From Tubulanus polymorphus (lineage: Eukaryota > Animalia > Nemertea), in assembly GCF_964204645.1 (NCBI RefSeq), contig NC_134032.1, positions 13,938,275 to 14,002,274 on the forward strand: a stretch of 64,000 bases of DNA. The letters are read 5' to 3'. Positions within the stretch are counted from its first letter, which is position 1, and each line of letters opens with the position of its first letter. Made by a program: the position numbers and the translations under genes. This document shows, piece after piece, positions 4,554-62,642 of this stretch. The notes under the pieces are model-generated. The model was not told where the DNA came from. It saw only the letters and a program-made list of their open reading frames with translations, and did not search any database.

Positions 4554-5640
4554 AATTGATAGCGATACCGTCCACGAGACGCAACTGATAGCGATACTGT
4601 CCACGAGACACAACGGATAGCGGCACTGTCCACGAGACGCAACTGATAGCGATACTGTCCACGAGACGCAACTGATAGCATTACTGTCCACGAGACACAA
4701 CGGATAGCGGCACTGTCCACGAGACGCAACTGATAGCGATACTGTCCACCAGACGCAACTGATAGCGATACTGTCCACGAGACGCAACTGATAGCGATAC
4801 TGTCCACGAGACGCAACTGATAGCGATACTGTCCACGAGACGCAAAGGATAGCGATTCTGTCCACGAGACACAACGGATAGCGGCACTGTCCACGAGATG
4901 CAGCTGATAGCAATACCGTCCACGAGACGCAACTGATAGCAATACCGTCCACGAGATGCAACTGATAGCGATACTGTCAACGAGACGCAACTGATAGTGA
5001 TACTGTCAACGAGACGCAACTGATAGCGATACTGTCAACGAGACGCAACTGATAGCGATACCGTCCACGAGACGCAACTGATAGCGATACTGTCCACGAG
5101 ATCGAACTGATAGCGATACTGTCCACGAGACGCAACTGATAGCGATACGGTCCACGAGACGCAGCTGATAGCGATACCGTCCACGAGACGCAGCTGATAG
5201 CGATACCGTCCACGAGACACAACTGATAGCGATACTGTCCACGAGATCGAACTGATAGCGATACTGTCCACGAGACAAAACTGATCGCGATACCGTCCAC
5301 GAGATGCAACTGATAGCGATACTGTCAACGAGACGCAACTGATAGCGATACTGTCAACGAGACGCAACTGATAGTGATACTGTCAACGAGACACAACTGA
5401 TAGCGATACTGTCAACGAGACGCAACTGATAGCGATACCGTCCACGAGACGCAACTGATAGCGATACTGTCCACGAGACGCAACTGATAGCGGCACTGTC
5501 CACGAGACGGCAACTGATAGCGATACCGTCCACGAGATCGAACTGATAGCGATACTGTCCACGAGACGCAACTTATAGCGATACTGTCCACGAGATGCAA
5601 CTGATAGCGATACTGTCCACGAGACGCAACTGATAGCAAT
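4554..5640. repeat. 29-bp minisatellite, ~37 copies
   Basis: Same unit and same flanks as the 1859 array. Confidence 0.95.
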
Positions 5641-29700: not shown

Positions 29701-32700
29701 ATTCGGCGAAGGTGAAAACTTTTTTGCTCGTTTTCCACTGAATTTGTTCCACGGATGGGAGTAAAAAAAAATTCTATTTTTGTTTGACTTTTCTTCAAAT
29801 TTCGGGAGGCGGTTCCCGTAAACCAAGCTATTATAGAAAAAGCCTCATCTGGTGAACCATCAAAAATAGTTATTATTACGTTATAGGTTGTTACTAATGA
29901 TCGGATTTATGAGAACCACAACGGTATAGTGTACATTATGGAATAAAGTTCAAGTTTTTGTCAGTAGATGGCAGGCAGGTGGTATTTATAAAGTGACTGG
30001 GTGTCAACATGTGTAACTGAAATTGTCTATTGAAAACTTACGTCAATTTGCACAATACGCGCGATTTCCGATTCCTAGAAATGTAAAGAAAAAAAATTCT
30101 GAAATCAAGTTTTGAATAACTATACCACGGATGAAAGATTCCATGATCTAAATTCTTAGTTGACCCTCGCTTTAGAGACTATTTTGAGGATAATTGAACC
30201 GATGGATGCTGCGCGACATGATTTCAATATTCTACTAACTCGGTCTGAAGAACATTCACATCGATACAAAACTGTGACCGAGCCGCAACTTTTAAACATT
30301 CTTAGTTTCACTTAAAAACATTGCTTCACGCTATTATCAATACCAATTTTACGAATAATATGAACTCGGTAAGATGAATATTCGCATCGATACAAACTGT
30401 GACCGAGTGCGACTACTTTCAAACACTCTTTAGATAATACTGGATTCAGCTGCGATTAATTTAGGACCGAAGATACTATTGTACATAGCTTAATCAGTAG
30501 CGGATCCAAACTAGATTCCATTGTATTCCGGAATATAGTCGGAATAACATATTTTTTTTTAAAGTAACTCGATCCAACAGAATGTCCCAGATACAAGGAA
30601 ATTAGATCATATTTCAAAATTTTTAATGGTTAGGACCCCTAAACTGCGGCAGCTGCAGCGGTCAGTCAGGCAAAAAATATCTTTAAGGAATATAGCCAAA
30701 TTCACCAGTCCCCCACGGAACTGCCCCTAAGTAATGACATTTTAGAATTGAACCCATGATACCGTATAGCGGCTGCAAACAGATCGGTCACAATTACCAG
30801 TGTTTATGTTTTCGAACAACAAATAAGCTAGCAAAAACTAGGTGCCTTTAGCCTACGAGCAAAATTGTTGAGCAAAATTGTTCGTAGCTTTAGCCAAGTT
30901 TGACCTTGGTGGAGATATGCTATGGGATCTCTTAGAACATGGATAACCTAGGGCGAACTCTTTTATCAAATCGGAGAATCCGTTTGCCTCCAGTCGTACT
31001 CTTTTATTGGTCACGTGACTTGTTGGAGTCTCCGAAAACTCCTTTCTGTCGAGGTGGTGTGATTCGGATTTTTTGGTGCCAACCGAAGATTTCGGACGGA
31101 GACTTCGGAGGTCATAAAAGAGTACGCCCTTAGGGATATTTCAGCAGGAAAATCAATATCAGATTATAATTATCTGGTAAACTACGAAAATAATTATCTT
31201 TTACAACTTACGATAATGGTAGGAGCCTCGGGCTCCGGCGGCGGCGGCTCTGGGAAATCATCATTCTAGTAATCAAAATGAAATATCATGAAAAATTCTA
31301 GCTAACCCTAAAAGCAAGTATATATGGAGCCACCCATTAATGAAAGGGATGGCTCCAAATTCACTGAGAACGAGTAGGCGATCAAAAGGATATTTACCCA
31401 AAGGTCGTCGAATAAGTTGATGTCCTATAAAAAAGAATACAAAAAATTTATTACGATAAAGTATACTTATGTTTTTGGTAAATGACGCTTACTGATCACA
31501 AGTGACATATGGTCACGATAGTATCACAATTGCTTGCCGGTGAGGCTAGGCGTTCACCAGAGCCAAGTTTCATAGATGTTGGGAAAAAATAATACCAGCT
31601 GGGATCATTTCGAAATTTTTCAGTTATTACCAAGGTTTTCATTATGAAGTTATCACCTATGTTGAAGATTTACCTATAGGCAACCAACACGGCTGCCAAC
31701 CTCTGAAAAGTGCTATCGGTAACAAATTGTAATATGAAAGTAAATGTTCAAATCAATCAGTAATCAACAGTAAGACCCTCAGTTAGATCTTTCATACTTC
31801 TCATATGCATCGAACAAATCAAATCAGTATTTCTTGTCATAAAAGAGTAACAAATACCGAAAATCAGGAACAGTTGGCAGCTCTGGGTAACATTCATATC
31901 CGGTTTACAAAATCGGGCTCAGGTTGAAGAAATACCTCGAGGGTATTATTGATATACAGTCTATGAAACAGGGCTAAGGTTATCAATATTTAACATCGAT
32001 ATCGAAAATGATTTAATGAAATTGAAACTTACCTCCTCGCGCCGAATTTTCGGCGGGCTTACAGGTTGCTGTAAAATATTTTAAAAAAAGTTGAAATCAA
32101 CATTCAGATGTTGATACACATTTCTTTAGTAAATCTCAACTTTCAGATAGTCGTAATCTATAGTGAACCACAATGATAATAATCTACACGACTTAAAACA
32201 GGAAATAATCGTCAAGTCTTCATGAATAACCATGAACTGTGGGTGCAGAGACGTGAACATCACTTGGAAAGTGGTTCCACCGACGCTCGGACAATCGGAC
32301 TTTTTTCAATATTCAAAAACCAACATACAGAAACCAATGACCTTTAATGTCGCCACAATCATAGAACATGTCGAAAGCATAAAACTTACGACCACAAGTC
32401 AGCACAACAAGATCCTGTCTACAAGACAGACACAGACAGACACAGACAGACACAGACAGACACAGACAGACACAGACAGACCGAGGGTAGACCACTTTTT
32501 TCCCTGATTTTGTAGTATTAAGAATTTATAAATCCCCTGTGTTTTCCAGGATTTTGGTAAAAATCTATCAAATTCCCCAATCTTTCTGATTCAATGAGAT
32601 TGCCAGGTTTTCTAGGACATTAGCACCCTTGAATTGCTGAACAATGCTTATACCACTGGCGATTGTGAGATCCTATCTATGGACGAAAAGACAGATTGAA

Positions 32701-35700
32701 AGTAATTACAGGAGAACGATTCGATAGAATTGAAACTGACCTCGTCGACGGATCGGCGTCGCTTTCTGGTGACCTATAAAATAAACAAGAAACATTGATT
32801 TAGATTTAATCATTTTTCAAGTTCATGATCACGTGTAGTTCGAACATGGAAAACATTTCATGAGAGAAATTGAGTGGAGCCGATTTAAGACTGCGAGGAA
32901 AGATATCAGTAATGTCAGCGATGAGCGAATACTAAAAACATGGCCAAAACTTACTTCTTTTGTTGTTGTTACTGTTTGTGAACACTGATGCCATGAAAGA
33001 AAAAAAGAGAATTAATTTTAGTTTTGTTATTTTATGTTCAGTAGCACACGTAGGTATCAATATACGTAATAAATGAGTTCTAAGTGACGGATGCCTCGTT
33101 ATAGATATTGTTTTGATTCCGTATCGTTATTTAATAAAACGAACAGGAGAATTTTTATGACTTTGTTCCCGGTATGAAATACATTGGCTGTCAGATAGAA
33201 ATGAACACGACAGAAAATCCATGATACAAAAAAATGCTGACTTACTTCCTTCGGTGACGCTGTTGGTTTCTGTTGCAATAAAAGAAAGAAAATTCAGTAA
33301 GTTTTTTTTTAAATATTTCATATACAGCAGCAAACGTTAATAAACACAGTAGACATAAAAACTGGACAGGTTTATATAGATATCTGTATCTGAAAAATGA
33401 TTTTGATGTCATTAGCATAAATATCTTACATTAAGTTAAGTGCAATTCCTGAGTGCTAATGGATTAAAGTTGACGTTAAGACAGGATCATCTACGCGGGC
33501 ATACACGGGAAACGAATGACGCTTAATTATAAAATTGAAACTTACTCGTGCAGGAATGGCCGCTGCCGCAGCTGTTGCTGTTGGTGTTGGTTTCTATTGC
33601 AATAAAAGAAAGAAAATTCAGCAAGTTTTTTTTTATATTTCATATTCAGCAGCAAACGTTAAACACAGAAGACACAAAAACTGGGCAGGTTTAATATCTG
33701 TGTCTGGAAATCGATGAAAATCACAAAAAATAATTGCCCATAGGCCAAGAGGTTTACCACAGCCTTATGAAATGCTTATATCAGGTAACGAAATAGGGAT
33801 GTAAAGTGTAAGGTGCGAGTAGTTTCGGTCTCGGTTAGAGAAATGAACGTTATCGCGGACCCAAGACAGAGCCGCTAAACCGCGCCGTTCATCAGTCAGA
33901 ATAGGACCAATTCCATCGCATCTCAGCTGCAGCCTCGGTACGGGAATTCAGAGCGTCGTTACGAAATGCGAGTTAAAAACACCTACTTCCCACTTAACCC
34001 ATTAGCACTCAAGCCGCCCGTATCCGCCCTGCCTATTACTCCTCAAGCCGCCCGAATCCGCCCCGGTACTTTTTTCGTATGCTGCACAAAAGTGGGATTC
34101 GAACCCGATAGCTTATAACAATCTACACACCTAAGTCCTCGAAATATCAAACAGAAAATCGACATCCTCCTATTTCAATTTCTCAAGTATTTCGAGTTTG
34201 AACATGACATATCTGAGCGTTCACTTAAAATCAATGTAGCAGTATGTTTGGATGAATTTCGGGGGGGGGGGGGCCCAAAAGGACACAAGGATTTTGGTGG
34301 CCCATCTCCTCAAATCTTACATCATATGAAAGCCTTGACTATTTACTACAAAATAACACTAACTTGTAATGCATGGAAATAAACAGCCAATGAGCTATTC
34401 GGTATCGCGATAAACTTGGATTTTAATTTTAATTTTCTGAGGAGTAATCGACACTACATAGTGCAATTCCTGAGTGCTAATGGATTAAAGTTGATGTTAA
34501 GACAGGATCATCTACGAGGGAATACACGGGAAACGAATGACGCTTAATTATAAAATTGAAACTTACTCGTGCCGGAATGGCCGCTGCTGTTGGTTTCTGC
34601 TGCAATAAAAGAAAGAAAATTCAGTTTTGTTTTATATTTCATATTCAGCAGCAAACGTTAATAAACACAGTAGACATAAAAACTGGACAGGTTTATAGAT
34701 ATCTGTATATGAAAAATGATTTTGATGTCATTAGCATAAATATCTTACATTAAGTTAAGTGCAATTCCTGAGTGCTAATGGATTAAAGTTGATGTTAAGA
34801 AAGGATCATCTACGAGGGAATACACGGGAAACGAATGACGCTTAATTATAAAATTGAAACTTACTCGTGCAGGAATGGCTGCTGCTGCAGCTGTTGGTTT
34901 CTGCTGCAATAAAAGAAAGAAAATTCAGTTTTGTTTTAAATTTCATATTCAGCAGCAAACGTTAAACACAGTAGACATAAAAACTGGACAGGTTTATATA
35001 GATATCTGTATCTGAAAAATGATTTTGATGTCATTAGCATAAATTTCTTACATGAAGTTAAAATCAAACATGGCACATGGTAAATCATTTTGAAGGGAAT
35101 CGAACTCAGATTAAATTCCGTAACTTTTGACAAAATTCTGATGAAAAGCTCTTTAAGAATCGATTGTTATATTATTTGATGATCATTGGTTTACATATAT
35201 CTGTTGGTTAATATTATCAATGAACTTGTGGTACAGTCGCCAATCCCACGCGAAAAATGATTTGGACGCTTGATAATCAGACTTATTTAATATTCAACGC
35301 CCCCTGGTGAAAATATACAAAAACCGTTGACCTTGAAACTCGTCACTATCATAGAAAATGTCGCAAGTGAACAGATGGAGAGATGAACGGACGGACAAAA
35401 AAGTCCATGATACAGAAAACTTCAAACTTACAAATGCTGCTGCTGTTGTTGCTGCTGCTGCTGTTGCTTTCATCTGCCATAAAAGAAAAGAGAATTCATG
35501 AATTTCTTGTGTTATTTCGTATTCAGTTGCAAACATTAAACATCGATCATATCTTGATTAAAACAACAACAAAAAACATGTTTTTTATCTGTGTTTGGAA
35601 AAGCTCTGATATTATGTAACTTTGAAATTGATATTTCTGTATGTTTGTTTTACGGTTTAAAAGATATAAAGTCCATTAAACAGAAAAAATTCAAACTTAC

Positions 35701-38700
35701 TTCTAATGCTTTTTTTTTCCTTTCCCTCTGTAAAAGAAAAGAGAATTCATTTATTTAGTTTTGTTATTTCAGACTCAGTAACTGTGTGACCTAAATCCGC
35801 CTGTAATTATTCGATAGAATTTACTTACTTCCATTTTTCTCTTCTCTTTCAGAGTCTATAAAGTAAAAACGATTCAATTAAATTTTTTTTCTATTTTCAA
35901 GAGTGATGAGAGTAATCAACAATAGAAATTTCAGCGACCTTAAACCAGAAATTATTGTGTGATTGTTTGGTATCAGCTGAGCTGTTAAAATGAGCAGAAA
36001 CTAAAACTTAGCAAAGTGGCAACAACTGGAAGACAGGTAGAGAATGTTGCAGTCTTCGTAAAAAACGACAGAGTTTACTTAATTTGTTATCGACTTCGAA
36101 AGAATTAAGCTTAGCCGTCTTAAAGCGAAGTTTCACGGGAATCCATCGAGAAATACAGGGCAAACTTTGGTTTTTTCGTAGCTAGTCGACCAATGGTTGG
36201 AAATCACTGAACGCGCAATAGCTCAGTCGAAACATATTCCAGCCATCTTGGAATCATGAAGTCCAAACTACAGCGACCGTGCTCAGTCGATCATTTCTGA
36301 CTATAGTTATAACTGACATTCTGTTGCACTTAGTTCACAAATAGTCGACTAAAAACTGCGATAACCAAAGTTCGTCCCGGCTGTGACGCGCTAAAAAGAA
36401 ATTCAAGATGGCCGCCGATGACATCCTTCAATAGGGGTTAACGTGTGCCCTATATCGCACCGAGGATTGCAGGCTGGATGATGCTGGGACTGCACACACT
36501 GAGTAAGATTAGATGGCCCCCACAACCGAAGAAACATTAATATACTCTCATATTTTAGTTGTCATAATCAAGTATGGATATTATTAACACTATTATTCTT
36601 ACCTCCTGCGCGACGAGTCGGTCGCGTAGTTCGTGGGCGTACTCGTAGCAGTTGTCAACTGCTACTTTCGGCCCACGAACTACTACAATTGGGTGTACCC
36701 TCGGCGTATCTACGATCACTTGCTGTAAATAGAGAACAAAAGAATCTGTATGAGCATTTTAAATCAGTAGCAGTTTGAAAGTGATGAGAAATAAACGTCA
36801 TTCACTGAAAGCTCGTTATGTACAACAATGAATTTCAGTAATCTGTTCGTTTATAATCGATATGAAATTATTAAAATGTTTTATTTTGGACGGAATTCTC
36901 AGGTTTATAATAAAACTAACAAATAGTTAGATAAGTCGTTATATCCAAAGTCATTTTAACGTGAAAGTAATGAATTGAATACAAAATGTATAGAGCATTT
37001 TAACCCTTTGACTGTTTAATTTATGTAATTAAAGTGGCTCCCCCTAGGGTAAGCTGCACTTCCTTTGAAATCAATCTTTCTCACATTACCGGATATTTTC
37101 TTGTCAGCGTTTTCTGGAACGAGGCCCTGAGCGACGTCCCCAACTTTAACTCGAAAACTGTTTCGATTTCCTGAAATATAAATGAAAAATTTTACATCTC
37201 CATAAATATCAATTAGAGGAAAACTGAAAGAGGTGTTTATTGACACCTTGAATGACACATGAATTGCTTGTCAACGATTGATGATATATGAATTAATCGG
37301 GGTCCAATTCTGTATTTTCCTTTCATAGGAATGAAAGTTACGAAAGCAGTGTTGTCGTATGTCAGTTACATCTTTATTCTTCAAGTTCTCCGTGTTCCTG
37401 TTCCGTCCGATGAGTCGGGGTAGTCAATCAGTGTGACTACTAGCAGGATCAATAAATATATGTTGATTTTGAATATATCGATGATTGAATTGAACTGACC
37501 GGCAAAATCTCTAGTCTCCAGCCCCGATATATCAACGAGGTAATACCGGTACACAAATGTCTATTGTCAATAAGACATATATAAAATTTATCGAACAGAA
37601 AACATACAGAATGAAATATGTTATATTACAAAATGGATAAGCGAACATTCACAATTGTAATTATTTTGAAATGCTCCAATATTGACATCTTCACCCGTCA
37701 AAGGATTCGAACCCACTACGCTAAAGCTGTTCCCCGAACCCCTTGACCTCACGAGTCGTTGGAGTCGTTACTAGCCGACCAGAATCCGGTCGTACCAATC
37801 ACAGCGCTTGTAACAAACCGTCAGTAGACTTCTGTTGGTTTTCCCGTTTAATGGACCAATCAGCGAACGTTTTACCGAACAAGGAAGTATTTCGCAAATC
37901 GATATATGACGTCACACGCAACAGCGCCAGTAATGAAATCACGCTTCGTGAGGCCAGGGGGCTGGTGGAAGCGAGTTCGGGAGTGAAACCGGACCCCTGG
38001 CAAGCGAGGATGCAATATTGATGACGTAGCACACATTGACTCACACAAAACCATAGGCGTCCCCGAGGGGGGTGCAGGGGTAGCGGACCCTCTTCAAGAT
38101 AGCTAACTTCTCAAGTTAACATGTAATCAATGTTCAAGATTTTTCTTGCCAATTTGACTTAAGTCCTTTAACTCTAAATGATTCATTTAGAGCCTGGAAA
38201 ACGTCTCTAAAGCGTCAAATTTAAAAATTGTTTTTGGGGGAGGCCCCCCAAACACCAGACATTGTGCTTGGATGCTTGATTGATGCTTATTCGAACCCCT
38301 TATGCAAATTCCTGGGGATGCCTATGAGAACCTGTTAAATAACGCACAGGTATGAATGTATATGAACATCTTTGTAATTCCGGTTTTTACGGCATCAAAA
38401 AAGTTGCGATATTTGCTTCGCTATTAACACTCCCGTTAAATTATACAGTCGAATTACTTAAGCTCATCTCTTACAGTTTTCACTCTATGGAGCTCGAAAG
38501 TTTCTATTGATTTTCCTACTTTTATGTTGACAATGATGGGCACTCTGAGGGTTTTTTTTTTATCATCTCTTACAGTTTTCACTCTATGGAGCTCGAAAGT
38601 TTCTATTGATTTTCCTACTTTTATGTTAACAATGATGGGCACTCTGAGGGTTTTTTTTTTTTATCAAATCACCCGTGAGTGCTGAAAGAGTTATGCCCTT

Positions 38701-41700
38701 GGATGATATATACCGGGAGGAGGGTTGATACGACGTGGCTCCTTAACTCATTTCCACCCAAACACGTACTCGTATGTTCGTTATCTCCCATCACATTCCT
38801 GTCAAAACCGTACTGGCAAAATGGTTGGCTTGTTTCTTAACTCAAAACCGTACTGATACGGTTGGCTTGTTTCTTAACTCTAAACTGTACCGATACGGTT
38901 GGCTTGATTCTTAACTCAAAACCGTACCGATACGGTTGGCTTGTTTCTTAACTCAAAACCGTACTGATACGGTTGGCTCGTTTCTTAACTCAAAACCGTA
39001 ATGATACGGTTGGCTTGATTCTTAACTCTAACGATAGATGGCGAATTCATCGCACAACACCAGTTAGTTTAATGCCTTTTACTACTAAACAAACTCATCA
39101 GTTGTTCTATACAGTGTGCGAGTGACATCATCTATTGAAATGGGGGCTGAACACGCATATATTCTGCAAAATACTCCCTCTGCACTGGTTATCGCTACAG
39201 ATTTTATCACTCTTAGACGAAATGCCGCTTATTTTACATGAAAATGCAAGACTAGATCAAAGATACAAAACAAATTTGATGAGAAGATATCTCTTCTAGT
39301 TTTTGTTTTATGAATCTCTGAAAAACACGGAAATCCTGGCAAAACGCAGCATTTCCTAAAAAAAATAGGCGTGGCAGGAAAAGAGTTACGAATTTTTTTC
39401 ATTTATATTCCCGCTTTTTTTTCTCATATACCCTAATTATTCATTCGCCTTAAGCCCGCCGCACCCGGCATAACATTTGTTTCGCCAAAACAGAAAACAC
39501 ACTTTTCAGAACACGTTTTGCCCACAAACAATAAAATGTTCAACGGACACGACATATTGCTGTTCGGCGTTTTGTGTTTTGCCTTCCCCGCACACGGCAT
39601 AACAAACAACAGGCTTAAACCTCATGTACTAACACAGTACAAATTATTTTCATCTCAAGTCTCAACATATTACAATTGATAACCAGCCAACAGAACGGAT
39701 ACATCTAAACTTACTTCGATGTCTGGGGACGCCAACTTGGACCTCGTTCCAGTGTGATGCTGTAAAAGAATAAAATTCATTAATACAAAGCCTAGGAATT
39801 GGTAAATCGACCTTCGAAAAAATCATCTTTTTTTGCAGAAAATCTACCAGGCAAAAGAAAAAAGCGAGTCGGAATCTATTCAATCGTTGCGCTTATGAAA
39901 ATCAGCACCAGTTTATGGGCATAAAAATGTGCGCCAAGAATTGAATTTGATGACCAATACAAATAAACCAAAAATAGACAGGTTTGATATCTGTAACCGA
40001 ATTGGATTTAGAGCCGCTTTTTTCAGGTCAAAAACGATAAGTTACGAAGGGAATCGAACTCTGATTAAATTCTGTAACTTTGATGATAATTCTGATGAAA
40101 AACTCATTAGAATCGGTTGTTTCAAGGTAACAGAAGAATTTATACTTACTGCCTTTGCTGCTGTTTGTTTACGCTGATGACATGAAAGAAAAAAAGAGAA
40201 TTCATTTTAGTTTTGTTATTTCACGTTCACACGTTAAATACAGTAAATATAAATACATCAATAAAAGAGATACATAAAATATATGCACATATATCCGTGA
40301 GCAAATGCTTCCAGATTTTACTGTGTGTGCTAATATTATATTAAAAAAACTTGATTTTAAAATAATTCTAAGTGACGGGAATTTATTTCATTGAAAGCAG
40401 GATTATTTTCATGACTTTGTTCCCGGTATGAAATATACGATGAAAATCACAAACAAATCATCGTCTGTCAGAAAGAAATAAACACCACAGAAATTCCATG
40501 ATACAAAAAACTTCTCACTTACCTCTGGTGCTGGTGCTGTTGTCGTCGTCGCTGAATTCTGTCGCAATAAAAAAAAGAAGAGAATTCATGAATTTCTTGC
40601 ATTATTTCATATTCACTAGCAAACATTAAACACAGGAGATCATATTATAATTAAAACAAAAGACAAGTTTTACATCTGTATTTGGAAAAACCCTGATATT
40701 TCTGTATTCGTTTGTTTGAGGGTTTTATTTAAACAATATAAAGTCCATTAAACAGAAAAATTCAAACTTACTGTATTTGTCGCTGTTGGTCTGTTCTGTT
40801 GCAATAAAAGAAAAGAGAATTCATTAATTTCTTGCATTAAAACTCTGATCTCTGTAACTTTGATATTTCTGTATTCATTTGTTTTACAGTTTGATTCAAA
40901 CGATATAGAGTCCATGAAACAGAAAAATTCAAACTTCTGTTGCTGCTGCTGCTGCTGCTGCTGCAGCAAACTGTCGCGATGAAAGTATAGTAATTAATTG
41001 CGTTGTTATTTCATATTGAGTAGCACACATTTAACAGAGATCATGATTAAAACGAATACCAGACAGGTTTAATATCTGGAAAAAGATTTCATCAGAGTAA
41101 ACTTGTTACAATGAGAGAAAACAAAAAACACCACGCGATAAATCAGTTTGATAATTCCTTTCATCGGGATATTTGCACTTTAAAAATGACAATTGTAATT
41201 ATTATCATTACTATTATCGTTATTACTACGAGTTTGATGATAATTATGAACTATACGTGCAAATATAAGCGTATGTGTAAGTGATCGCGCGCACAAATTG
41301 AAGACGAAATCAGTTGCAACTCGCTTAAAGAGTTATGAAGTTTCAATGACTCTCAGCGATAATGGTAGATATCATATTCCACCGAGGAGATTAATAGAAA
41401 ACTTACATTCACAAAATGTATTTCCGCTTCTACTGTAATCTAGAAAAGAGAATTAACATTCATATCTATAAAAATCATTCATTAAATGATCAATGAATCT
41501 AAGCGCCAGTTTTATGGAGACCAATGTTTACTTTAATAAATCTGGGTTAACTTGATTAAAAGTGAATTCAGTTAACTGAGCACGGGTTAAACATAATATC
41601 AGTCTAACCGGCTTCAGAGGACCAGGTTAAACAAAACAGGTTTATATAAAATGATATCATGAAATTGAAACTTACTGGCGGCGGAATTTCCTCCGGGACT

Positions 41701-42655
41701 TCTGGCTGTTAGAAAAGAACAATAACATTCACATTCAGGTCAAAATCGATAAGTTACGAAGGGTATCGAACTCCGATTAAATTCTGTAACTTTGATGATA
41801 ATTCTGACGAAAAACTCAAAAGAATCGGTTGTTTCAAGGTAACAGAAGAATTTATACTTACTGCCTTTGCTGCTGTTTGTTTACGCTGATGACATGAAAG
41901 AAAAAAAGAGAATTCATTTTAATTTTGTTATTTCACGTTCACACGTTAAATACAGTAAATATAAATACATCAATAAAAGAGATACATAAAATATATGCAC
42001 ATATATCCGTGAGCAAATGTTTCCAGATTTTACTGTGTGCTAATGTTATATAAAAAAAACTTGATTATAAAATAATTCTTAGTGACGGGAATTTATTTCA
42101 TTGAAAGCAGGATTATTTTCATGACTTTGTTCCTGGTATGAAATATACGATGAAAATCACAAACAAATCATCGTCTGTCAGAAAGAAATAAACACGACTA
42201 GAAATTCCATGATACAGAAAACTTCTCACTTACTTCTGGTGCAGCTGTTGTTGTTGTCGCTGAATTCTGTCGCAATAAAAAAAAAAGAGAATTCATGAAT
42301 TTCTTGCATTATTTCATATTCAGTAGCAAACATTAAACACAGGAGATCATATTATAATTAAAACAAAAGACAAGTTTTATATCTGTATTTGGAAAAACTC
42401 TGATATTTCTGTATTCGTTTGTTTTAGGGTTTTATTTAAACAATATAAAGTCCATTAAACAGAAAAATTCAAACTTACTGTATTCGTCGCTGTTGGTCTG
42501 TTCTGTTGCAATAAAAGAAAAGAGAATTCATTAATTTCTTGCATTAAAACTCTGATCTTTCTGTAACTTAGATATTTCTGTATTCGTTTGTTTTACAGTT
42601 TGATTCAAACGATATAGAGTCCATGAAACAGAAAAATTCAAACTTCTGTTGTCGT

Positions 42656-42694
<39 letters not shown>

Positions 42695-44024
42695 AGCAGC
42701 AGCAAACTGTCGCGATGAAAGAAAAGTAATTAATTGCGTTGTTATTTCATATTGAGTAGCACACATTTTTAATCATGATTAAAATTGAGATCATGATTAA
42801 AACGAATACCAGACAGGTTTAGGTTTAATATCTGGAAAAAGATTTCATCATAGTAAACTTGTTACAATGAGAGAAAACAAAAAACACCACGCGATAAATC
42901 AGTTTGATAATTCCTTTCATCGGGATATTTGCACTTTAAAAATGACAATTGTAATTATTATCATTACTATTATCGTTATTACTACGAGTTTGATGATAAT
43001 TATGAACTACACGCGCAAATATAAGCGTATGTGTAAGTGATCGCGCACACAAACTGAAGACGAAATCAGTTACAACTTGCTCAAAGAGTTATGAAGTTTC
43101 AATGACTCTCAGCGAAAATGGTTGATATCATATTCCACCGAGGAGATTAATAGAAAACTTACAAAATGAATTTCCGCTTCTACTGTTATCTAGAAAAGAG
43201 AATTAACATTCATATCTATAAAAATCATTCATTAAATGATCAATGAATCTAAGCGCCAGTTTTATGGAGACCCATGTTTACTTTAATAAAATCTGGGTTA
43301 ACTTGATTAAAAGTGAATTCAGTTAACTGAGCACGGGTTAAACATAATATCAGTCTAACCGGCTTCAGATGACCAGCTTAAACAAAACAGGTTTACATAA
43401 AATGATATCATAAAATCTAAACTTACTGGTGGCGGAATTTCCTCCGGGACTTCTGGCTGTTAGAAAAGAACAATAACATTCACGTTCATTAGAATTATTT
43501 GAAAAATAAGCATCTGGGGGCGGTTGCACGTCAATCGAGTCTTAAGTCCGAAAGTGGTCTTAAATCATAAGACTGGTCTTAAGTTGTTAGATTGGCTATA
43601 GAACCAAGTTGGTCTTAGACTGATCTTAAGTCTAAGCCCTGACTATGGAACCGGCCCCAGAAAATGTTTGTTTTGAATATTGATTGTAACATCAAATGAT
43701 AACCGGTCCCGGGTTCAAATCCACATTTAATTAAATATTCAATCTGTATCCTGGATGGTTAGTGAGGTGGAGATATCTTAACGGAGGAGTGGACGGTATC
43801 TTTGATGGGTTGGTATGAACGCCAACACCAGGGGGAGTGGGGGCGGGGTATTTAAATCTAGCTCCGATATATCAATGAAATACTGCGCACTATCTCAAAA
43901 ATATCGATGACGTAGTGCACATCTACTCAGGTAAGTATATTAGGTTTATCAATGTATATACAGACATATTATTGGAACAAAAAAAAAAATGAATACTTAC
44001 TATCTGCTTTCGTTTTGGAGCCAT
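23274..44024 (-). CDS. 36-exon microexon-rich gene; about 670-aa low-complexity, putatively nuclear protein with a central KH-like domain
   Basis: Each coding exon has a pyrimidine tract+AG acceptor and GT donor (last exon ends at the stop), and the joined frame has no stop. Exons in transcript order: 44001-44024 MAPKRKQI; 43427-43456 PEVPEEIPPP; 43163-43189 ITVEAEIHF; 42479-42502 NRPTATNT; 42234-42266 NSATTTTAAPE; 41862-41885 RKQTAAKA; 41676-41705; 41407-41439; 40772-40795; 40523-40558; 40150-40173; 39715-39759 HHTGTRSKLASPDIE; 37090-37170; 36603-36722; 35829-35855 TLKEKRKME; 35701-35727 RERKKKALE; 35432-35473; 34865-34900; 34567-34596; 33546-33593; 33246-33269 KPTASPKE; 32955-32984; 32741-32773 VTRKRRRSVDE; 32033-32068 QPVSPPKIRREE; 31398-31424 DINLFDDLW; 31212-31265; 30042-30074 ESEIARIVQID; 29353-29385; 29210-29236 KRKLKVPAS; 28675-28716 DPVSPKRARIGPVK; 27855-27899; 27336-27386 RDEIPPLRRSPRLRRRR; 26682-26727 (phase 0-1); 25937-26002 (1-1); 24018-24253 (1-0); 23274-23741 (terminal). 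Confidence 0.8.
24018..24253 (-). CDS. Penultimate exon (35) of the microexon gene
   Basis: tattttacag|TGGAACC...TTACGGGAG|gtaagc; 236 nt, phase 1-0; inside ORF 23934..24302. Confidence 0.8.
25225..25266 (+). ncRNA. Minimal type I hammerhead ribozyme (Penelope-like element pLTR type)
   Basis: ACAC-CTGACGA-T-GATCTC-tagggt-GAGATC-GAAA-CGTC-GTGT. It has both core boxes, a 6-bp stem II, stem I ACAC/GTGT, a palindromic ACGT stem III and a GTC site. A TATATA tract lies upstream and AATAAA downstream. Confidence 0.75.
25369..25505. mobile_element. Truncated copy of the piggyBac-type MITE
   Basis: TTAA-CCCTTTCAGTGC followed by the reverse complement of ~46105-46241. Confidence 0.75.
26174..26375. 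repeat. 40-bp minisatellite x5
   Basis: Unit gagttaacactgaactcagaatctagttctacatttgcga. Confidence 0.9.
27468..27765. repeat. 43-bp minisatellite x7
   Basis: Unit gaatagctcggtaggaccggaaaggttcagggattctatatgt; the paralogous intron near 18200-18235 has only one partial unit. Confidence 0.9.
30950..31130. mobile_element. MITE (Harbinger/Tourist-like ends)
   Basis: TIR agggcg(a/t)actctttta ... taaaagagtacgccct. Confidence 0.55.
36158..36378. mobile_element. MITE
   Basis: Imperfect TIR gggcaaactttggtt ... aaccaaagttcgtccc. Confidence 0.5.
36603..37170 (-). CDS. Exons 13-14 (81+120 nt): KH-like domain without GxxG loop
   Basis: EIETVFELKLGTSLRASFQKTLTRKYP|QVIVDTPRVHPIVVVRGPKVAVDNCYEYAHELRDRLVAQE has a strand-helix-strand-strand-GP-helix pattern like type I KH folds (judged by eye). 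Paralogous copies differ mainly by synonymous or conservative changes. Confidence 0.65.
38052..38326. mobile_element. MITE with CATAGGC ends
   Basis: TIR cataggcgtcccc ... ggggatgcctatg; near-TSD aaaac/agaac. Confidence 0.6.
38803..39030. repeat. 37-bp minisatellite x6 with internal hairpin
   Basis: Unit caaaaccgtactgatacggttggcttgtttcttaact (AACCGTA/TACGGTT). Confidence 0.9.
40022..43483. repeat. Intragenic tandem duplication (~1.7 kb x2) carrying five microexons each
   Basis: 40022-41733 and 41734-43483 are near-identical including introns. Confidence 0.9.
43513..43660. mobile_element. MITE
   Basis: TIR ctgggggcggtt ... aaccggccccag. Confidence 0.55.
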
Positions 44025-44538
44025 ATTTCTAGAAAACAAAATAGAGACATCATAAACATTTGAGCGACGACACTTATCATCATTTGAAAATTGGCATATC
44101 GATTGTAAACAAATCCGCCAGATGACAGATCTGTAATCAGTCAGTGCTATGGAGGGTAGCCCTTGGGTTTTAATAGAAACAATATCAGAGACAACACACA
44201 TTAACATCTGGCCCCAGTGTTACCGCACTATATCAGTATGCATGGTTACTGCAGTTACATGGTTAAAAAATTTCTAAGTATTTCATGGGTGATTTTTCAA
44301 TTTTCCAAAGCGGAACTGAACCGATATCATCATGCTTCAGTTAACATTTTAGCGGTGAATGGTTGATAAAGATGATTCTCAAGGGAATTCGCTGACGAAA
44401 GTTGCACTTGGCAAATACACAAAATATAAATGAATTACCCAAATATTTCCTTGATTTTAGGAAAATTTCCGAAATTTATTTTTGGAAATAATTCCAAACT
44501 AGGAGTTATCATTTCAAAATTCCAAAGTTTTTCCCAAT

Positions 44539-53535: not shown

Positions 53536-54470
53536 TGATACTGTCCACGAGACGCAACTGATAGCGGCACTGTCCACGAGACGCAGCTGATAGCGATACT
53601 GTCCACGAGACGCAACTGATAGCGATACTGTCCACGAGACGCAACTGATAGCGATACTGTCCACGAGACGCAACTGATAGCGATACTGTCCACGAGACGC
53701 AACTGATAGCGATACTGTCCACGAGACGCAACTGATAGCGATACTGTCCACGAGATGCAACAGATAGCGATACTGTACACGAGACGCAACTGATAGCGAT
53801 ACCGTCCACGAGATGCAACAGATAGCGATACCGTCCACGAGACGCAACTGATAGCGATACTGTACACGAGATGCAACTGATAGCGATACCGTCCACGAGA
53901 CGCAACTGATAGCGATACTGTCCACGAGACGCAACTGATAGCGATACTGTCCACGAGATGCAACTGATAGCGATACTGTACACGAGATGCAACTGATAGC
54001 GATACTGTACACGAGATGCAACTGATAGCGATACCGTCCACGAGACGCAACTGATAGCGATACCGTCCACGAGACACAACTGATAGCGATACTGTCCACG
54101 AGATGCAACTGATAGCGATACTGTCCACGAGACGCAACTGATAGCGATACTGTCCACGAGATGCAACTGATAGCGATACTGTCCACGAGACGCAGCTGAT
54201 AGCGGCACTGTCCACGAGACGCAACTGATAGCGATACTGTCCACGAGACGCAACTGATAGCGATACTGTCCACGAGACGCAACTGATAGCGATACTGTCC
54301 ACGAGATGCAACTGATAGCGATACTGTACACGAGATGCAACTGATAGCGATACTGTCCACGAGATGCAACAGATAGCGATACTGTACACGAGACGCAACT
54401 GATAGCGATACTGTCCACGAGATGCAACTGATAGCGATACTGTACACGAGACGCAACTGATAGCGATATA
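53536..54470. repeat. 29-bp minisatellite, ~32 copies
   Basis: Same unit; the right flank 54470-55090 is homologous to ~2030-3040. Confidence 0.95.
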
Positions 54471-56937
54471 CAAATTGTTGTTTTCGTGAAGCAGTCAGTG
54501 TCTTCCGGTTCACATCAATAACAGCAAATTGGAGAAACAGAAAAAAAAAATAAAACAAAATATTAAAAAAGATTTGAAACACATCAAAATATCAGAAAAC
54601 GAAGAGTGACGAGGTATTTACCTTATTTGCTTTTGCTGTTTGTCCAATTGGCCATTGAGCAAGTTGACAGTTGCATGTTGACCACAGGGAGAGTTGACAG
54701 TGTTCAAGTTGATCAGTTTGAGTTGAAAGTAGCAAGTAGTTGCCGTTCCTGTTGTTGTCATCGTCATTTTTTTACAATATAGGGGATATATATATATCCT
54801 TTCAGACATCATTTTTTTCATACACAATTTTTTTCTTACATAATCATAATCTATTTTGATTATAATAATTCTTTTAATTGTAAAAATGTTTCTGTTTTTT
54901 CCCTAAACATACTTGTTAGAACTCAAGTCAATCAAAATGTTGATTGTATCAAGATTTTCATAATTGACTTTCATGAGGTCACATGAGACTTGAAGTAATG
55001 TTTTTACAGGTTCGATCCCTGAAGATACACATTATTTTTCCTATTATTTATTTATTCTTTTTAACACTTTGGATTCTTTTGAACCCAGAATTAGTTCAAC
55101 AAAAAATTATTAAATGCGAAACACAATTCGCAAAAACAAATAAACAGAAGAATATTTCTCATTTTCGATAAATATAAAAATCTTTTACAAAAACTACAAA
55201 CACTAAGGGATCATTCATTTGTTACGTACGCATAAAATTTGAATTTTTCAACCCCCCCCTCCCCCTCCGTACGCAAAATCGGCCATTCTTTCATATACAT
55301 TAAGCATTACAGTACACAATTGCACTGATCCCCCTCCCCTAATGCGTACGTAATAAATGAACGAATGACCGATAAGGTTGTTGACCATTGCATGAATGCC
55401 ACTACAGCAAGAATTAAGGCGACATTTGTCCAATAGTAACTTCTATCAATGTTTGATATGGTTAATTTTAGCTTCCTTTCACTGATTCATCAAAGATTAA
55501 CATATCGTAAGCCTACAGTTATACTTGTTATACGGCCAATATTAACAGTTGACAACTGCCAATCAACCACAAACTACTGCGTTATGAAATGAGGATTTTA
55601 CACTATAGTTTCAATGTCAGATGTATATCTTATGATTATCAGTAAAATAACAATTGAAGTAGATACTCTATTGATTAAGTAATTACCAACTTTGGAGAAA
55701 GATAATTAATATCATCATAGTTCTGAAAAGTATATTGTAATTTTGGCACTCTCTCACATGTCAGTTTTACGCTTATGTCAACTCTAGTCATCACTTATAA
55801 ATATCTAATTAACATTTTTGAGATAGTTCAAAAAGTCCAGTCGAGCTCAGTGCAGTTGAGATCAGATCAGAACAGGGCCGACCTGCGAGTCGTGAGCTCC
55901 AGATACTATAACGAAAAGGCCGACCAACGAGTCGCGAGCTTTGACATACATCAATAAATAATATTCACGTCAGATCATCGAAAATATACTACATGTAGTT
56001 AGTATTCTCCTCGTCTGGATTCGGATTTTAAGAGATGTTCGACAAAGGATCGCGTCCGATAGTAGAGCACACCTCTTTAATAGTCTCTCTACAACATACG
56101 CACGGTATCAACTGGTCGACCAGCACGAAATTACACCTTTCTGCTGATCGTGGAATTGGACGAAAACAGTTTAAATCTATTCGTTTCAACTGCATCAATC
56201 ATCGTGTACCAGATACATGTACAGAGTGTTTGCAACTGTCACCTTGGTAAAGTGGGATAACTTGTATTCAGGTTGTTCGATATACATAGTCCTGGACCAA
56301 ACGCCCACGAACTACGGGACAGCCTTACCAAGGAGCAGGATCAACCAGCAAACAAGCCAAAAGAATATGAGGTTCTGTACACCACATAAGAAGTGTTTCT
56401 AATCAAGACTTTATATCATTGTAACTGTTTATTACCCCTTTATTTATATATTTCTAAGAATTTGAATTAATGTTTACCATTATTGACGTTTATCACTTTC
56501 AAACTGCTACTGATTTAAAATGCTCGTACAGATTCTTTTGTTCCCTATTGATAGGAAGTGATGGTAGAATGGCCGAGGTGGCCAACTGCCCCAGTCGTAG
56601 TTGGTGGGCTGAGAGTAGCAGTTGACAACTGCTACAAGTACGATGAACTACGACTTGCAGCAACTGAGAAAATCAGAGAAAAAGAAGACTAAGGAATATG
56701 AGATTATAACAAACAGATTATCTCGCGCTCGCGATACTCTATCTATCAGTGGCCATAAAGAATGATTGCCATGTTTCCCACGGTGAATTTTGATCTAAGC
56801 CGAACCCGGTCTTTAATCTTTCAGAAAATGCCATGAACTGTTCCGGAAAGGATCACAAGGGTCCTCCAGGGGGCGAAGGAATCAATGGACACACCCTCCA
56901 CAGTCGCTCTATCAATAACTACAGGGACAGAATTTAT

Positions 56938-59170
56938 CACGAGCGGACGCAGTAAAGGTGGTCAAGCAAAGGGGAAGAGTAAGAGCAGATCAAATAGAGC
57001 TAGTCCACCGGGACTTGGTAATTTTATCAATAACTACAGAGACAGAATTCATCACGAGCGGACGCGGTAAAAGTTGTCAAGCAAAGGGGAAGAGTAAGAG
57101 CAGATCAACTAGAGCTAGTCCACCTGGACCTAGTCATTTTATCAATAACTACAGAGACAGAATTCATCACGAGCGGACACGGTAAAAGTTGTCAAGCAAA
57201 GGGGAAGAGTAAGAGCAGATCAATTAGAGCTAGTCCACCTGGACCTAGTCATTTTATCAATAACTACAAAGACAGAATTTAACAAAAATTTGTCATTTAT
57301 ATTTCAGGAAATCGAAACAGTATTCGAGGTCAAGATGGGGCGTCAATTAGGGCCTCGTTTCAACGCACACTTGTGCGTAAATTTAAGGACATTGTGGTAG
57401 ATTTGCCCCGGGTGTACGCCATTGTGGTAGTTCGTGGGCCGAAAGTAGCAGTTGACAACTGCTACGAGTGCGATGAACTACGACTTGCAGCAACTGAGAA
57501 AATCAGAGAAAAAGAAGACTAAGGAATATGACTAAGGAATATGAGATTATAACAAACAGATTATCTCGAGCTCGCGATACTCTATCAGTGGCCATAAAGA
57601 ATGATTGCCATGTTTCCCACGGTGAATTTTGATCTAGGCCGAACCCGATCTTTAATCTTTCAGAAAATGCCATAAACTGTTCCGGAAAGGATCACAAGGG
57701 TCCTCCAGGGGGCGAAGGAATCAATGGACACACCCTCCACAGTCGCTCTATCAATAACTACAGGGACAGAATTTATCACGAGCGGACGCAGTAAAGGTGG
57801 TCAAGCAAAGGGGAAGAGTAAGAGCAGATCAACTAGAGCTAGTCCACCTGGACCTAGTCATTTTATCAATAACTATAGAGACAGAATTCATCACGAGCGG
57901 ACGCGGTAAAAGTTGTCAAGCAAAGGGGAAGAGTAAGAGCAGATCAACTAGAGCTAGTCCACCGGGACCTAGTCATTTTATCAATAACTATAGAGACAGA
58001 ATCTATCAAAAATTTGTCATTTATATTTCAGGAAATCGAAACAGTATTCGAGGTCAAGATGGGGCGTCAATTAGGGCCTCGTTTCAACGCACACTTGTGC
58101 GTAAATTTAAGGACATTGTAGTAGATTTGCCCCGGGTGTACGCCGTTGTGGTAGTTCGTGGGCTGAAAGTAGCAGTTGACAACTGCTACGAGTGCGATGA
58201 ACTACGACTTGCAGCAACTGAGAAAATCAGAGAAAAAGAAGACTAAGGAATATGAGATTATAACAAACAGATTATCTCGTGCTCGCGATACTCTATCTAT
58301 CAGTGGCCATAAAGAATGATTGCAAAGTTTCCCACGGTGAATTTTGATCTAGGCCGAACCCGGTCTTTAATCTTTCAGAAAATGCCATGAACTGTTCCGG
58401 AAAGGATCACAAGGGTCCTCCAGGGGGTGAAGGAATCGATGAACACACCCTCCACAGTCGCTTTATCAATAACAGAGACAGAATTCATCACGAGCGGACG
58501 CAGTAAAGGTTGTCAAGCAAAGGGGAAGAGTAAAAGCAGATCAAATAGAGCTAGTCCACCTGGACCTAGTCATTTTATCAATAACTATAGAGACAGAATT
58601 CATCACGAGCGGACGCGGTAAAAGTTGTCAAGCAAAGGGGAAGAGTAAGAGCAGATCAACTAGAGCTAGTCCACCGGGACCTAGTTATTTTATCAATAAC
58701 TATAGAGACAGAATCTATCAAAAATTTGTCATTTATATTTCAGGAAATCGAAACAGTATTCGAGGTCAAGATGGGGACGTCAATTAGGGCCTCGTTCCAA
58801 CGCACACTTGTGCGAAAATTTAAGGACATAACCATTGATTTGCCGATAGCCGCGGTCGTATTTCGTGGGCCGAAAGTAGCAGTTGACAACAAGTGCAATG
58901 AACTAAGACTTGCAGCAACGTAGAAAATAAAAGAAATAGAAGACTAAAGAATATGAGAATATGAATATCAACAACAGAGACAGAATTCATCACGAGCGGA
59001 CGCGCCCAAGGTTGTCAAGCAAAGGGGAAGAGTAAGAGCAGATCAACTAGAGCTAGTCCACCTGGACCTAGTCATTTTCATTAACTACAGAGACAGAATT
59101 CATCACGAGCGGACGCGGTAAAAGTTGTCAAGCAAAGGGGAAGAGTAAGAGCAGATTAAGTAGAGCTAGT
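56938..59170 (+). pseudogene. H2A: Nine histone H2A 5' fragments (about 21 codons, ATG changed to ACG)
   Basis: Units translate to (T)SGRGK[G/S][G/C]QAKGKSKSRS[N/T]RAS, versus the invertebrate H2A tail MSGRGKGGKAKGKSKSRSSRAG. Similarity stops before GLQFPVGR. Confidence 0.8.
58744..58923 (+). pseudogene. Intron-less KH-like copy (exons 13+14 fused)
   Basis: EIETVFEVKMGTSIRASFQRTLVRKFKDITIDLP..VFRGPKVAVDN.. runs without the intron. Sister copies at ~57308-57522 and ~58032-58246 carry a 1-nt deletion (gatggggcg vs gatggggacg). Confidence 0.75.
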
Positions 59171-59323
59171 CCACCTGGACTTGGTCATTTTATCAATAAC
59201 TACAGAGACAGAATTTATCAAAAATTTGTCATTTATATTTTCAGGAAATCGAATCATAATTCGAATTAAAGGGGGGCATCAATTAGGGCCATGTTCCAAC
59301 GTACACTGAGACGTAAATTTCAG

Positions 59324-62300
59324 GAATTCGAAACAGTTTTCGAGTTGAAGTTGGGGACGTCGCTCAGGGCCTCGTTCCAGAAGACGCTAATGCGAAAAAA
59401 TCCGGTCATGTGAAAAAGATTGATTTCAAAGGAAGTGTAGCTTACCCTAGGGGGAGCCACTTTGATTACATAAATTAAACAGTCAAAGGGTTAAAATGCT
59501 CTATACATTTTGTATTCAATTCTTTACTTTCACGTTAAAATGACTTTGGATATAACGACTTATCTAACTATTTGTTAGTTTTATTATAAACCTGAGAATT
59601 CCGTCCAAAATAAAACATTTTAATAATTTCATATCGATTATAAACGAACAGATTACTGAAATTCATTGTTGTATATAACGAGCTTTCAGTGAATGACGTT
59701 TATTTCTCATCACTTTCAAACTGCTACTGATTTAAAATGCTCATACAGATTCTTTTGTTCTCTATTTACAGCAAGTGATCGTAGATTTGCCGCGGGTTCA
59801 CGCAATTGTAGTAGTTCGTGGGCCGAAAGTAGCAGTTGACAACTGCTACGAGTACGCCCACGAACTACGCGACCGACTCGTCGCGCAGGAGGTAAGAATA
59901 ATAGTGTTAATAATATCCATACTTGATTATGACAACTAAAATATGAGAGTATATTAATGTTTCTTCGGTTGTGGGGGCCATCTAATCTTACTCAGTGTGT
60001 GCAGTCCCAGCATCATCCAGCCTGCAATCCTCGGTGCGATATAGGGCACACGTTAACCCCTATTGAAGGATGTCATCATTTTTCATTTATATTTCAGGAA
60101 ATCGAAACAGTTTTCGAGTTAAAGTTGGGGACGTCGCTCAGGGCCTCGTTCCAGAAAACGCTGACAAGAAAATATCCGGTAATGTGAGAAAGATTGATTT
60201 CAAAGGAAGTGCAGCTTACCCTAGGGGGAGCCACTTTAATTACATAAATTAAACAGTCAAAGGGTTAAAATGCTCTATACATTTTGTATTCAATTCTTTA
60301 CTTTCACGTTAAAATGACTTTGGATATAACGACTTATCTAACTATTTGTTAGTTTTATTATAAACCTAGAACATGGAAATTTGAAATCATGAACTTGAAA
60401 ATGAAAAATGATTAAATCTAAATGTTGCTCGTTTATTTTATAGGTCACCAGAAAGCGACGCCGATCCGTCGACGAGGTCAGTTTGAATTCTATCGAATCG
60501 TTCTCCCGTTATTACTTTCAATCTGTCTTTTCGTCCATAGATAGGATCTCACAATCGCCAGTGGTATAAGCATTGTTCAGCAATTCAAGGGTGCTAATGT
60601 CCTTGAAAACCTGGCAATCTCATTGAATCAGAAAGATTGGGGAATTTGATAGATTTTTACCAAAATCCTGGAAAACACGGGGGATTTATAAATTCTTAAT
60701 ACTACAAAATCAAGGAAAAAAGTGGTCTACCCTCGGTCGGTCGGTCGGTCGGTCGGTCTGTGTCTGTCTGTCTGTGTCTGTCTGTCTGTGTCTGTCTTGT
60801 AGACAGGATCTTGTTGTGCTGACTTGTGGTCGTAAGTTTTATGCTTTCGACATGTTCTATGATTGTGGCGACATTAAAGGTCATTGGTTTCTGTGTGTTG
60901 GTTTTTGAATATTGAAAAAAGTCCTATTGTCCGAGCGTCGGTGGAACCACTTTCCAAGTGATGTTCACGTCTCTGCACCCACAGTTCATGGTTATTCATG
61001 AAGACTTGACGATTATTTCCTGTTTTAAGTCGTGTAGATTATTATCATTGTGGTTCAATATAGATTACGACTATCTGAAAGTTGAGATTTACCAAAGAAA
61101 TGTGTATCAAAATTCTGAATGTTGATTTCAACTTTTTTTAAAATATTTTACAGCAACCTGTAAGCCCGAAAATTCGGCGAGACGAGGTAAGTTTCAATTT
61201 CATTAAATCATTTTCGATATTGATGTTAAATATTGATAACCTTAGCCCTGTTTCATAGACTGTATATGAAATATAAAAAAAAAAACTTACTGAATTTTCT
61301 TTCTTTTATTGCAACAGAAACCAATAGCTCCAGCAGCGGCAGCGGCCATTCCGGCACGAGTAAGTTTCAATTTTATAATTAAGCGTCATTCGTTTCCCGT
61401 GTATTCCCTCGTAGATGATCCTGTCTTAACATCAACTTTAATCCATTAGCACTCAGGAATTGCACTTAACTTTATGTAAGATATTTATGCTAATGACATC
61501 AAAATCATTTTTCATATACAGATATCTATATAAACCTGTCCAGTTTTTATGTCAACTGTGTTTATTAACGTTTGTTGCTGAACATGAAATTTAAAACAAA
61601 ACTGAATTTTCTTTCTTTTATTGCAGCAGAAACCAACAACAACAGCGACAGCAGCCATTCCTGCACGAGTAAGTTTCAATTTTATAATTAAGCGTCATTC
61701 GTTTCCCGTGTATTCCCTCGTAGATGATCCTTTCTTAACATCAACTTTAATCCATTAGCACTCAGGAATTGCACTTAACTTAATGTAAGATATTTATGCT
61801 AATGACGTCAAAATCATTTTTCATATACAGATATCTATATAAACCTGTCCAGTTTTTATGTCTACTGTGTTTAACGTTTGCTGCTGAATATGAAATATAA
61901 AAAAAAAAAACTTACTGAATTTTCTTTCTTTTATTGCAACAGAAACCAACAGCAGCAGCACCGAAGGAAGTAAGTCAGCATTTTTCTGTATCATGGATTT
62001 TCTGTCGTGTTCATTTCTATCTGACAGCCAATGTATTTCATACCGGGAACAAAGTCATAAAAATTCTCCTGTTCGTTTTATTGAATAACGTTACGGAATC
62101 AAAACAATATCTATAACGAAGCATCCGTCACTTAGAACTCATTTATTACGTATATTGATACCTACGTGTGCTACTGAACATAAAATAACAAAACTAAAAT
62201 TAATTCTCTTTTTTTCTTTCATGGCATCAGTGCAAACAAATAACAACAACAACAACGAAAGAAGTAAGTTTTGGCCATGTTTTTAGTTTTCGCTCATCGC

Positions 62301-62642
62301 TGACATTACTGATATCTTTCCTCGCAGTCTTAAATCGGCTCCACTCAATTTCTCTCATGAAATGTTTTCCATGTTCGAACTACACGTGATCATGAACTTG
62401 AAAAATGATTAAATCTAAATGTTGCTCGTTTATTTTATAGGTCACCAGAAAGCGACAACGATCCGTCGATGAGGTCAGTTTGAATTCGTGTAGATTATTA
62501 TCATTGTGGTTCAATATAGATTACGACTATCTGAAAGTTGAGATTTACTAAAGAAATGTGTATCAAAATTCTGAATGTTGATTTCAACTTTTTTAAAAAT
62601 ATTTTACAGCAACCTGTAAGCCCGAAAATTCGGCGAGACGAG
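59324..62642 (+). CDS. Inverted paralogous chain of 11 phase-0 exons in shuffled order (partial paralog or pseudogene)
   Basis: Exons 59324-59404, 59772-59891, 60098-60178, 60444-60476, 61154-61186, 61318-61359, 61630-61668, 61943-61969, 62231-62263, 62441-62473, 62610-62642. All are AG/GT-bounded, stop-free and multiples of 3. No start or terminal exon found. Confidence 0.5.

Follow-up and report, generated by a model that had tools for sequence, protein, structure and literature searches.

How does the beginning of a histone H2A gene come to lie nine times over between pieces of an unrelated gene, and does the resulting array serve any function? The question is raised by a locus of the nemertean Tubulanus polymorphus, in a stretch of 64,000 nucleotides (C8:13938275-14002274 of NC_134032.1, hereafter the window) from an assembly of 268 Mb in 77 contigs. 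A first-pass annotation, made from the letters alone, had described a captured H2A tail amplified as a 115-bp unit and interleaved with exons likened to KH domains, and had offered two possible uses for it. The reading that we prefer is plainer. The array is probably a non-functional, locus-specific higher-order tandem repeat in which a fragment of an H2A gene and the debris of two exons of another gene, here called A'B', have been amplified together.

Nested repeats at a single locus

Tandem Repeats Finder delimits three blocks of period 115 (56910-57279, 57749-58002 and 58462-58714) and a fourth of period 113 (58970-59220), with matches of 90-94%. These hold nine full units in register, starting at 56910, 57025, 57140, 57749, 57864, 58464, 58576, 58970 and 59078 and spanning about 56910-59190; they fall into groups of 3, 2, 2 and 2, every one of which is closed by a partial unit of ~30 nt. 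In nine out of nine, ACG stands at the initiator position and is followed by codons for SGR..., just as had been noted at the outset. The unit measures 115 nt, or 108-113 nt in three copies with small deletions, and pairwise identity between units is 83-99%. Its length is not divisible by 3, and the corollary drawn earlier, that no long frame of successive tails exists, holds as well, as readings in the H2A frame stop in the next unit. Two subtypes can be told apart, a (RSKGG type) and b (RGKSC type), and they follow each other in the same order in each group; the third unit of the first group is an extra b, 98% identical to the second, while the fifth and seventh units are 99% identical.

The groups alternate with other elements in a composite repeat of 713-839 bp, inside which the 115-bp monomer is nested (Table 1). 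From the left, a remnant of an intron is followed by B' with its tail, a spacer, the units a b b, then A'B' with tail and spacer, a b, and A'B' with tail and spacer again; the right part continues with a b, A'B' with a truncated tail, a b and a remnant of A', and its edge is joined within exon A, at 59314-59324, to a recent copy of the parent-type gene. The alternation of two to three units with a second element was thus described correctly at first, whereas the label given to that second element, and its status as an exon, were not. In DNA searches of the whole genome the 115-bp unit is confined to this one locus, as is fused A'B', and the spacer has three local copies, 96% identical, with none elsewhere. 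A 13-bp duplication (2.2 copies) at 57517-57544, present only in the tail of A'B' copy 1, marks a small slippage event.

Satellites and 20-kb duplications of 93-97% identity surround the region, and in such a repeat-rich setting the copy number or the arrangement might be an artefact of assembly. We hold this to be highly improbable: specific substitutions and indels distinguish the copies, and their consistent nesting is what genuine, diverged copies would show and a mis-joining of reads would not.

Table 1. Elements of the array and neighbouring gene copies, numbered from the first nucleotide of the window.
Feature	Position	Strand	Remarks
Left-edge remnant, last ~63 nt of the parent-type intron before exon B	56492-56554	+	82-90% identity to 59709-59771 and paralog loci
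First B' pseudo-exon, running into a stop without a recognisable splice donor	56555-56692	+	tblastn 59% to exon B; ORF 56558-56692
Spacer copy 1, locus-specific	56693-56909	+	Also at 57523-57748 and 58247-58463; lost by deletion from the fourth repeat
H2A-derived units 1-3 and partial unit	56910-57283	+	ACG at 56939, 57054 and 57169
A'B' copy 1: ~24 nt of intron end, A' fused to B'	57284-57522	+	87%/80% nucleotide identity to parent exons A/B; ends in a stop
H2A-derived units 4-5 and partial unit	57749-58007	+	ACG at 57778 and 57893
A'B' copy 2, with the 1-nt deletion of copy 1	58008-58246	+	Sole copy with an open frame (57797-58246) linking unit 5 through B'
H2A-derived units 6-7 and partial unit	58464-58719	+	ACG at 58490 and 58605
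A'B' copy 3, the sole copy open in its native frame, 60 codons	58744-58923	+	Parent-like base present, unlike in copies 1 and 2
H2A-derived units 8-9 and partial unit	58970-59220	+	ACG at 58992 and 59105
Last A' remnant, stop inside	59245-59320	+	Abuts the recent parent-type copy
Recent rearranged partial copy of the micro-exon gene	59314-62487	+	93-97% identity to copies on other contigs
Full-length copy of the micro-exon gene, parent type	25600-44100	-	Exon A 37170-37090, exon B 36722-36603, ~25 micro-exons of 24-51 nt

Descent of the unit from an H2A gene

H2A is encoded in the genome by a cluster on contig C10, with six identical canonical genes, by one H2A.X-like gene each on C4 and C1, and by a variant on C5. 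In the canonical cluster (C10:8.36-8.42 Mb) the H2A copies lie 10-16 kb apart and encode identical proteins, with H2B placed divergently beside H2A; the genes on C4 and C1 end in SQEY. Against these genes of its own genome the unit is identical at 15-16 of 21 residues, in register with the initiator codon and with the SGRGK...SRS..RA tail present; the resemblance to the H2A tail, first noted from the letters, is borne out far beyond chance. The BLOSUM62 score of the match is 82; shuffling the unit peptide at constant composition gives 27.5 +/- 5.1, and none of 20,000 shuffles reaches 82. At the nucleotide level, the ungapped local score is 19-21, in an alignment that begins a few bases before the initiator, and the maximum in the background of 13,886 other 115-bp windows of the same genome is 13-15; at most one in 20,000 shuffles equals it. 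The first-pass annotation had staked its proposal on nucleotide similarity of this kind to the genome's H2A loci, and that similarity is present beyond chance. Searches in both directions are equally exclusive. The first 30 residues of the C4 H2A, searched through the whole genome in six frames, match the H2A genes and the array only, and the unit peptide in the reverse six-frame search matches only the array and the H2A genes (E = 0.006 per genome for the canonical genes).

The unit peptide is compositionally simple, its nucleotide identity to H2A is 60-63%, and exact matches to any H2A locus reach 11 nt at the longest, all of which would suit a chance likeness thrown up by a low-complexity repeat rich in Lys, Gly, Ser and Arg. 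The shuffles, the reciprocal and exclusive searches of the genome, and an alignment that is ungapped, anchored at the initiator and extended collinearly have effectively refuted this explanation. Taken on the sequence comparisons, the descent of the array units from the 5' end of an H2A gene can be considered solid.

How much of the gene the unit represents is a further matter. With H2A proteins as tblastn queries against the window, the alignment of the unit covers H2A residues 1-43 and contains two 3-codon gaps, and the reading from one ACG to the next, of 38 codons plus 1 nt, ends in NNYRDRI opposite GNYAERI of H2A. The second half of this match taken alone has a P of about 0.016 by shuffling and is by itself only suggestive; it is collinear and in frame. 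The lengths add up, in that 129 nt less 18 plus 4 leader bases make 115, and the four leader bases with the T preceding them read TCATC, a sequence (tcatc) that also stands just before the ATG in both H2A.X-like genes. The unit therefore probably spans H2A codons 1-43 together with four leader bases, rather than the tail alone, and the tblastn match to residue 43 apparently takes in what is left of the first helix region. The rest of the histone fold is missing: tblastn with three H2A proteins covers only residues 2-43/52 in the window, and a genome search with Histone_H2A_C (PF16211) has no match on the contig of the array. The earlier statement that the histone fold is absent can accordingly be kept for all but this first region, and the proposed origin in an H2A gene fragment followed by tandem amplification is supported, with the capture of a tail only corrected to codons 1-43. 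An alternative account of the 29 nt before the ACG as captured 5'UTR was rejected. Their 10-nt match to the leader of the C1 H2A variant is ordinary, with 10% of windows reaching its score, and tblastn reads the same bases as codons ~30-43 in the frame of the previous unit, which is the better fit.

The donor was sought among the H2A genes of the assembly by comparing the first 21 codons (63 nt). The unit shares 38-40 of 63 nt (60-63%) with the canonical and C4 genes, at a pS of about 0.9 and a pN of about 0.22, and true H2A paralogs share 45 of 63 nt with each other, at a pS of 0.62 and a pN of 0.18; synonymous sites are saturated between the unit and every H2A gene in the assembly. The low identity and high pS rule out a recent copy of an existing H2A gene. 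Because the unit is as distant from the H2A genes as paralogs are from each other, the donor is no H2A gene in the present assembly, and a paralog now lost or unassembled is the simplest reading. Since the divergence is of the same order as that between paralogs, most of it would have arisen while the sequence was still a working H2A gene. The 15-16 residues kept despite synonymous saturation point either to such a donor, gone or unassembled, or to a spell under constraint at the protein level.

The interleaved elements as remains of a micro-exon gene

The elements between the unit groups derive from a gene carried on a segment of at least 20 kb, of which contigs C9, C11 and C8 together have at least 10 copies with 93-97% identity. 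The parent gene consists of many symmetric micro-exons of 24-51 nt (~25 or more) with canonical splice sites and of two exons of normal size, A (81 nt) and B (120 nt), separated by an intron of ~370 nt. In the recent copy at the right edge of the array the order of the pieces is scrambled, with exon A, exon B and exon A again, and then micro-exons out of order. In the minus-strand parent gene there is also an internal tandem duplication of 1.7 kb (40022-41737 against 41734-43488), each part having the same five micro-exons, one of which encodes RKQTAAKA. Other repeats occur in the window as well. A 29-bp satellite (32-37 copies, 90-94% matches) flanks the duplicated gene block at 1854-1988, 4557-5641 and 53537-54468, and a 72-bp repeat occurs twice (2375-2645 and 6015-6277). 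A 249-bp segment is repeated at 14875-15521, 16465-16800 and 23934-24302, on both strands and with the same open peptide of ~50 residues (…EPILIETVEDGPEDVKEAIDLF…), and looks like exons of another duplicated gene.

The KH label could not be upheld. Searched against Pfam, KH_1 (PF00013) included, the naturally fused copy at 58741-58920, which served as the domain query, had no match at E up to 10, and neither had the ORFs of parent exons A and B, taken one by one. The translations of exons A and B contain no GxxG loop, and an exhaustive HMMER search among 1.84 billion representatives found no relatives except for one repeat-protein artefact. The best match by language-model features (ESM atlas) scores 0.76, within the noise range, and belongs to a cluster with 10% KH_1 members; a single-sequence AlphaFold2 model has a pLDDT of 46 and is unusable for reading the fold. 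A KH identity thus finds no support in any of these five approaches.

The relation to the parent exons is much clearer. A' has 77% and B' 65-81% protein identity to exons A and B, with 80-87% identity at the nucleotide level. The two are fused in frame, at exactly the length that precise removal of the ~370-nt intron would leave, and ~24 nt from the end of the intron preceding A remain attached to A'. Copies 1 and 2 have in common a 1-nt deletion in A' by which they are frameshifted. The A'B' copies run on to a stop ~10 codons beyond the position of the parent donor site, where a reading of the sequence finds non-GT bases and no recognisable donor, and no micro-exons of parent type lie inside 56492-59313. 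Exon B also contains a 21-nt near-perfect palindrome (VAVDNCY codons), seen in the parent and in the array copies (56615-56635, 57445-57465, 58169-58189 and 59829-59849).

What had been called KH-like exons are older, diverged and intron-less pseudo-copies of the two parent exons. The pN/pS of A'B' against the parent, about 0.4, and a length preserved across the missing intron suggest that A'B' was probably once a coding exon, and the data are compatible with A'B' having been a coding paralog of the micro-exon family that is now dead.

Function, history and meaning of the array

In regard to function, the first-pass annotation had envisaged raw material for a chimera of histone-tail mimic and KH domain, or a template for small RNAs that match H2A mRNA. 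There are open frames that invite the former idea. Two repeats contain an ATG-started ORF of 61 codons with one H2A-like stretch (56885-57070 and 57724-57909); its counterpart in the third repeat (58427-58621) starts with GTG, is 64 codons long and has an ATG in frame 4 codons from its start. In the second repeat, the open frame at 57797-58246 joins unit 5 to the end of B', and its ACG-started stretch comprises 117 codons; ACG is a known near-cognate start codon, and here it has a purine at -3. The array might on these grounds encode protein, either 61-residue micropeptides or an ACG-initiated H2A(1-43)-A'B' chimera that mimics the histone tail, but we consider this very unlikely. Differences among the units are mostly non-synonymous, with a pN of 0.061 above a pS of 0.033, so that the frame of the unit appears to be under no coding constraint now, and the copies of the 61-codon type likewise differ from one another by amino-acid changes. 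Of the four groups, a single one lets the H2A frame continue into an exon copy, by way of a derived 1-nt deletion that leaves the first strand of A' out of frame, and in the others the frame is closed; there is no long ORF in the array. In the whole-genome searches no copy has ATG at the H2A start. A splice-site reading of the unit was also discarded, as the donor-like GGTAAA and GAGTAAGA stem from the codons for Gly-Lys and Ser-Lys, and splicing at either would put A' out of frame. The chimera proposed earlier is in this light speculation. According to a related account, this lineage had a chimeric gene of its own, of which the array is the relic or a locus with some weak activity left, and in which residues 1 to ~43 of an H2A variant were joined to the only folded domain of the micro-exon family, again as a histone-tail mimic. 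Such a gene would explain why the H2A protein sequence was kept while synonymous sites diverged, and why the reading length of A'B' was kept across the missing intron; as an account of the locus it is quite improbable.

A function in RNA must be weighed separately. The array lies immediately upstream of the recent gene copy and on the same strand, and A'B' is 80-87% identical to the parent exons over about 80-100 nt, which would fit a transcribed non-coding locus (a lncRNA, or a source of small RNAs of piRNA type) that possibly acts on the micro-exon family and not on H2A. Against this, which we think unlikely, stand the confinement of the array to a single locus of 3 kb and the lack of long inverted repeats in it, the palindrome inside exon B being the only hairpin; the shortness of the exact matches to H2A loci speaks in the same direction. 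Rfam has no match anywhere in the window. As for small RNAs directed at H2A mRNA, even the best in-register 24-mer has 6-7 mismatches between unit and H2A. Together, differences that mostly change amino acids and exact matches of at most 11 nt leave both coding constraint and H2A-targeting small RNAs unsupported.

For the non-functional higher-order repeat that we favor, we infer the mechanism and the order of events as follows. The starting piece would have been an H2A gene fragment that took in ~4 leader bases and the codons up to about 43, with its ATG already changed to ACG and with two 3-codon deletions. This piece may then have been duplicated head to tail, with the junction in a sequence of ATTCATC type where the leader resembles codon 43, a likeness that suggests tandem duplication mediated by microhomology. 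The tandem pieces would have diverged into an a/b dimer, and the dimer, the A'B' element and the unique spacer would have come to form one repeat of 0.7-0.8 kb. Unequal crossing-over or replication slippage presumably multiplied this repeat to about four copies, after which the array may have suffered small deletions and gained an additional b unit in its first group. A later recombination inside exon A would have brought the recent copy of the parent gene to the right edge.

This history has partial parallels in several known systems. Histone orphons are single histone genes that lie apart from the main cluster, and the array resembles these, and unprocessed gene-fragment pseudogenes, in being a histone piece away from the cluster on C10, with a dead start codon and a frame free of selection. 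Unlike orphons, it has only about codons 1-43, in nine head-to-tail copies that form a composite with unrelated gene fragments, and no donor can be recognised for it among the H2A genes in the assembly. Higher-order tandem repeats and young satellites can arise from gene fragments, and the array shares with higher-order repeats a 115-bp monomer nested in a repeat of 713-839 bp and subtypes in a fixed order, as from unequal exchange. A satellite DNA family, however, has many copies, usually at several loci; being tiny, with 9 full and several partial monomers in about 3 kb at one locus, the array is not a satellite family. Helitrons and transposons of the Pack-MULE type capture gene fragments, and the mosaic of unrelated fragments, with pieces of exons and intron edges, is reminiscent of their cargo. 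Transposon-borne capture was nevertheless rejected, as the array has no second copy in the genome, no long ORF and no recognisable termini, and local duplication explains its structure. Antimicrobial peptides of the buforin and parasin type are cleaved from the N-terminal region of genuine H2A protein; the unit encodes the corresponding region, but lacks both an ATG and any constraint.

Our findings also call for caution in annotation, since a histone-tail-like peptide can be read from a locus where nothing indicates that it is produced. The array would bear on histone-tail mimicry only in the event of RNA or peptide evidence. Of modest interest are the absence of the donor paralog from the assembly and the intron-less A'B', which suggests that the micro-exon family once had an earlier member that has since died. 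More broadly, the locus offers a worked example of how a small fragment of a highly conserved gene may be duplicated at microhomology, joined with the exon debris of a fast-expanding orphan family, and amplified locally.
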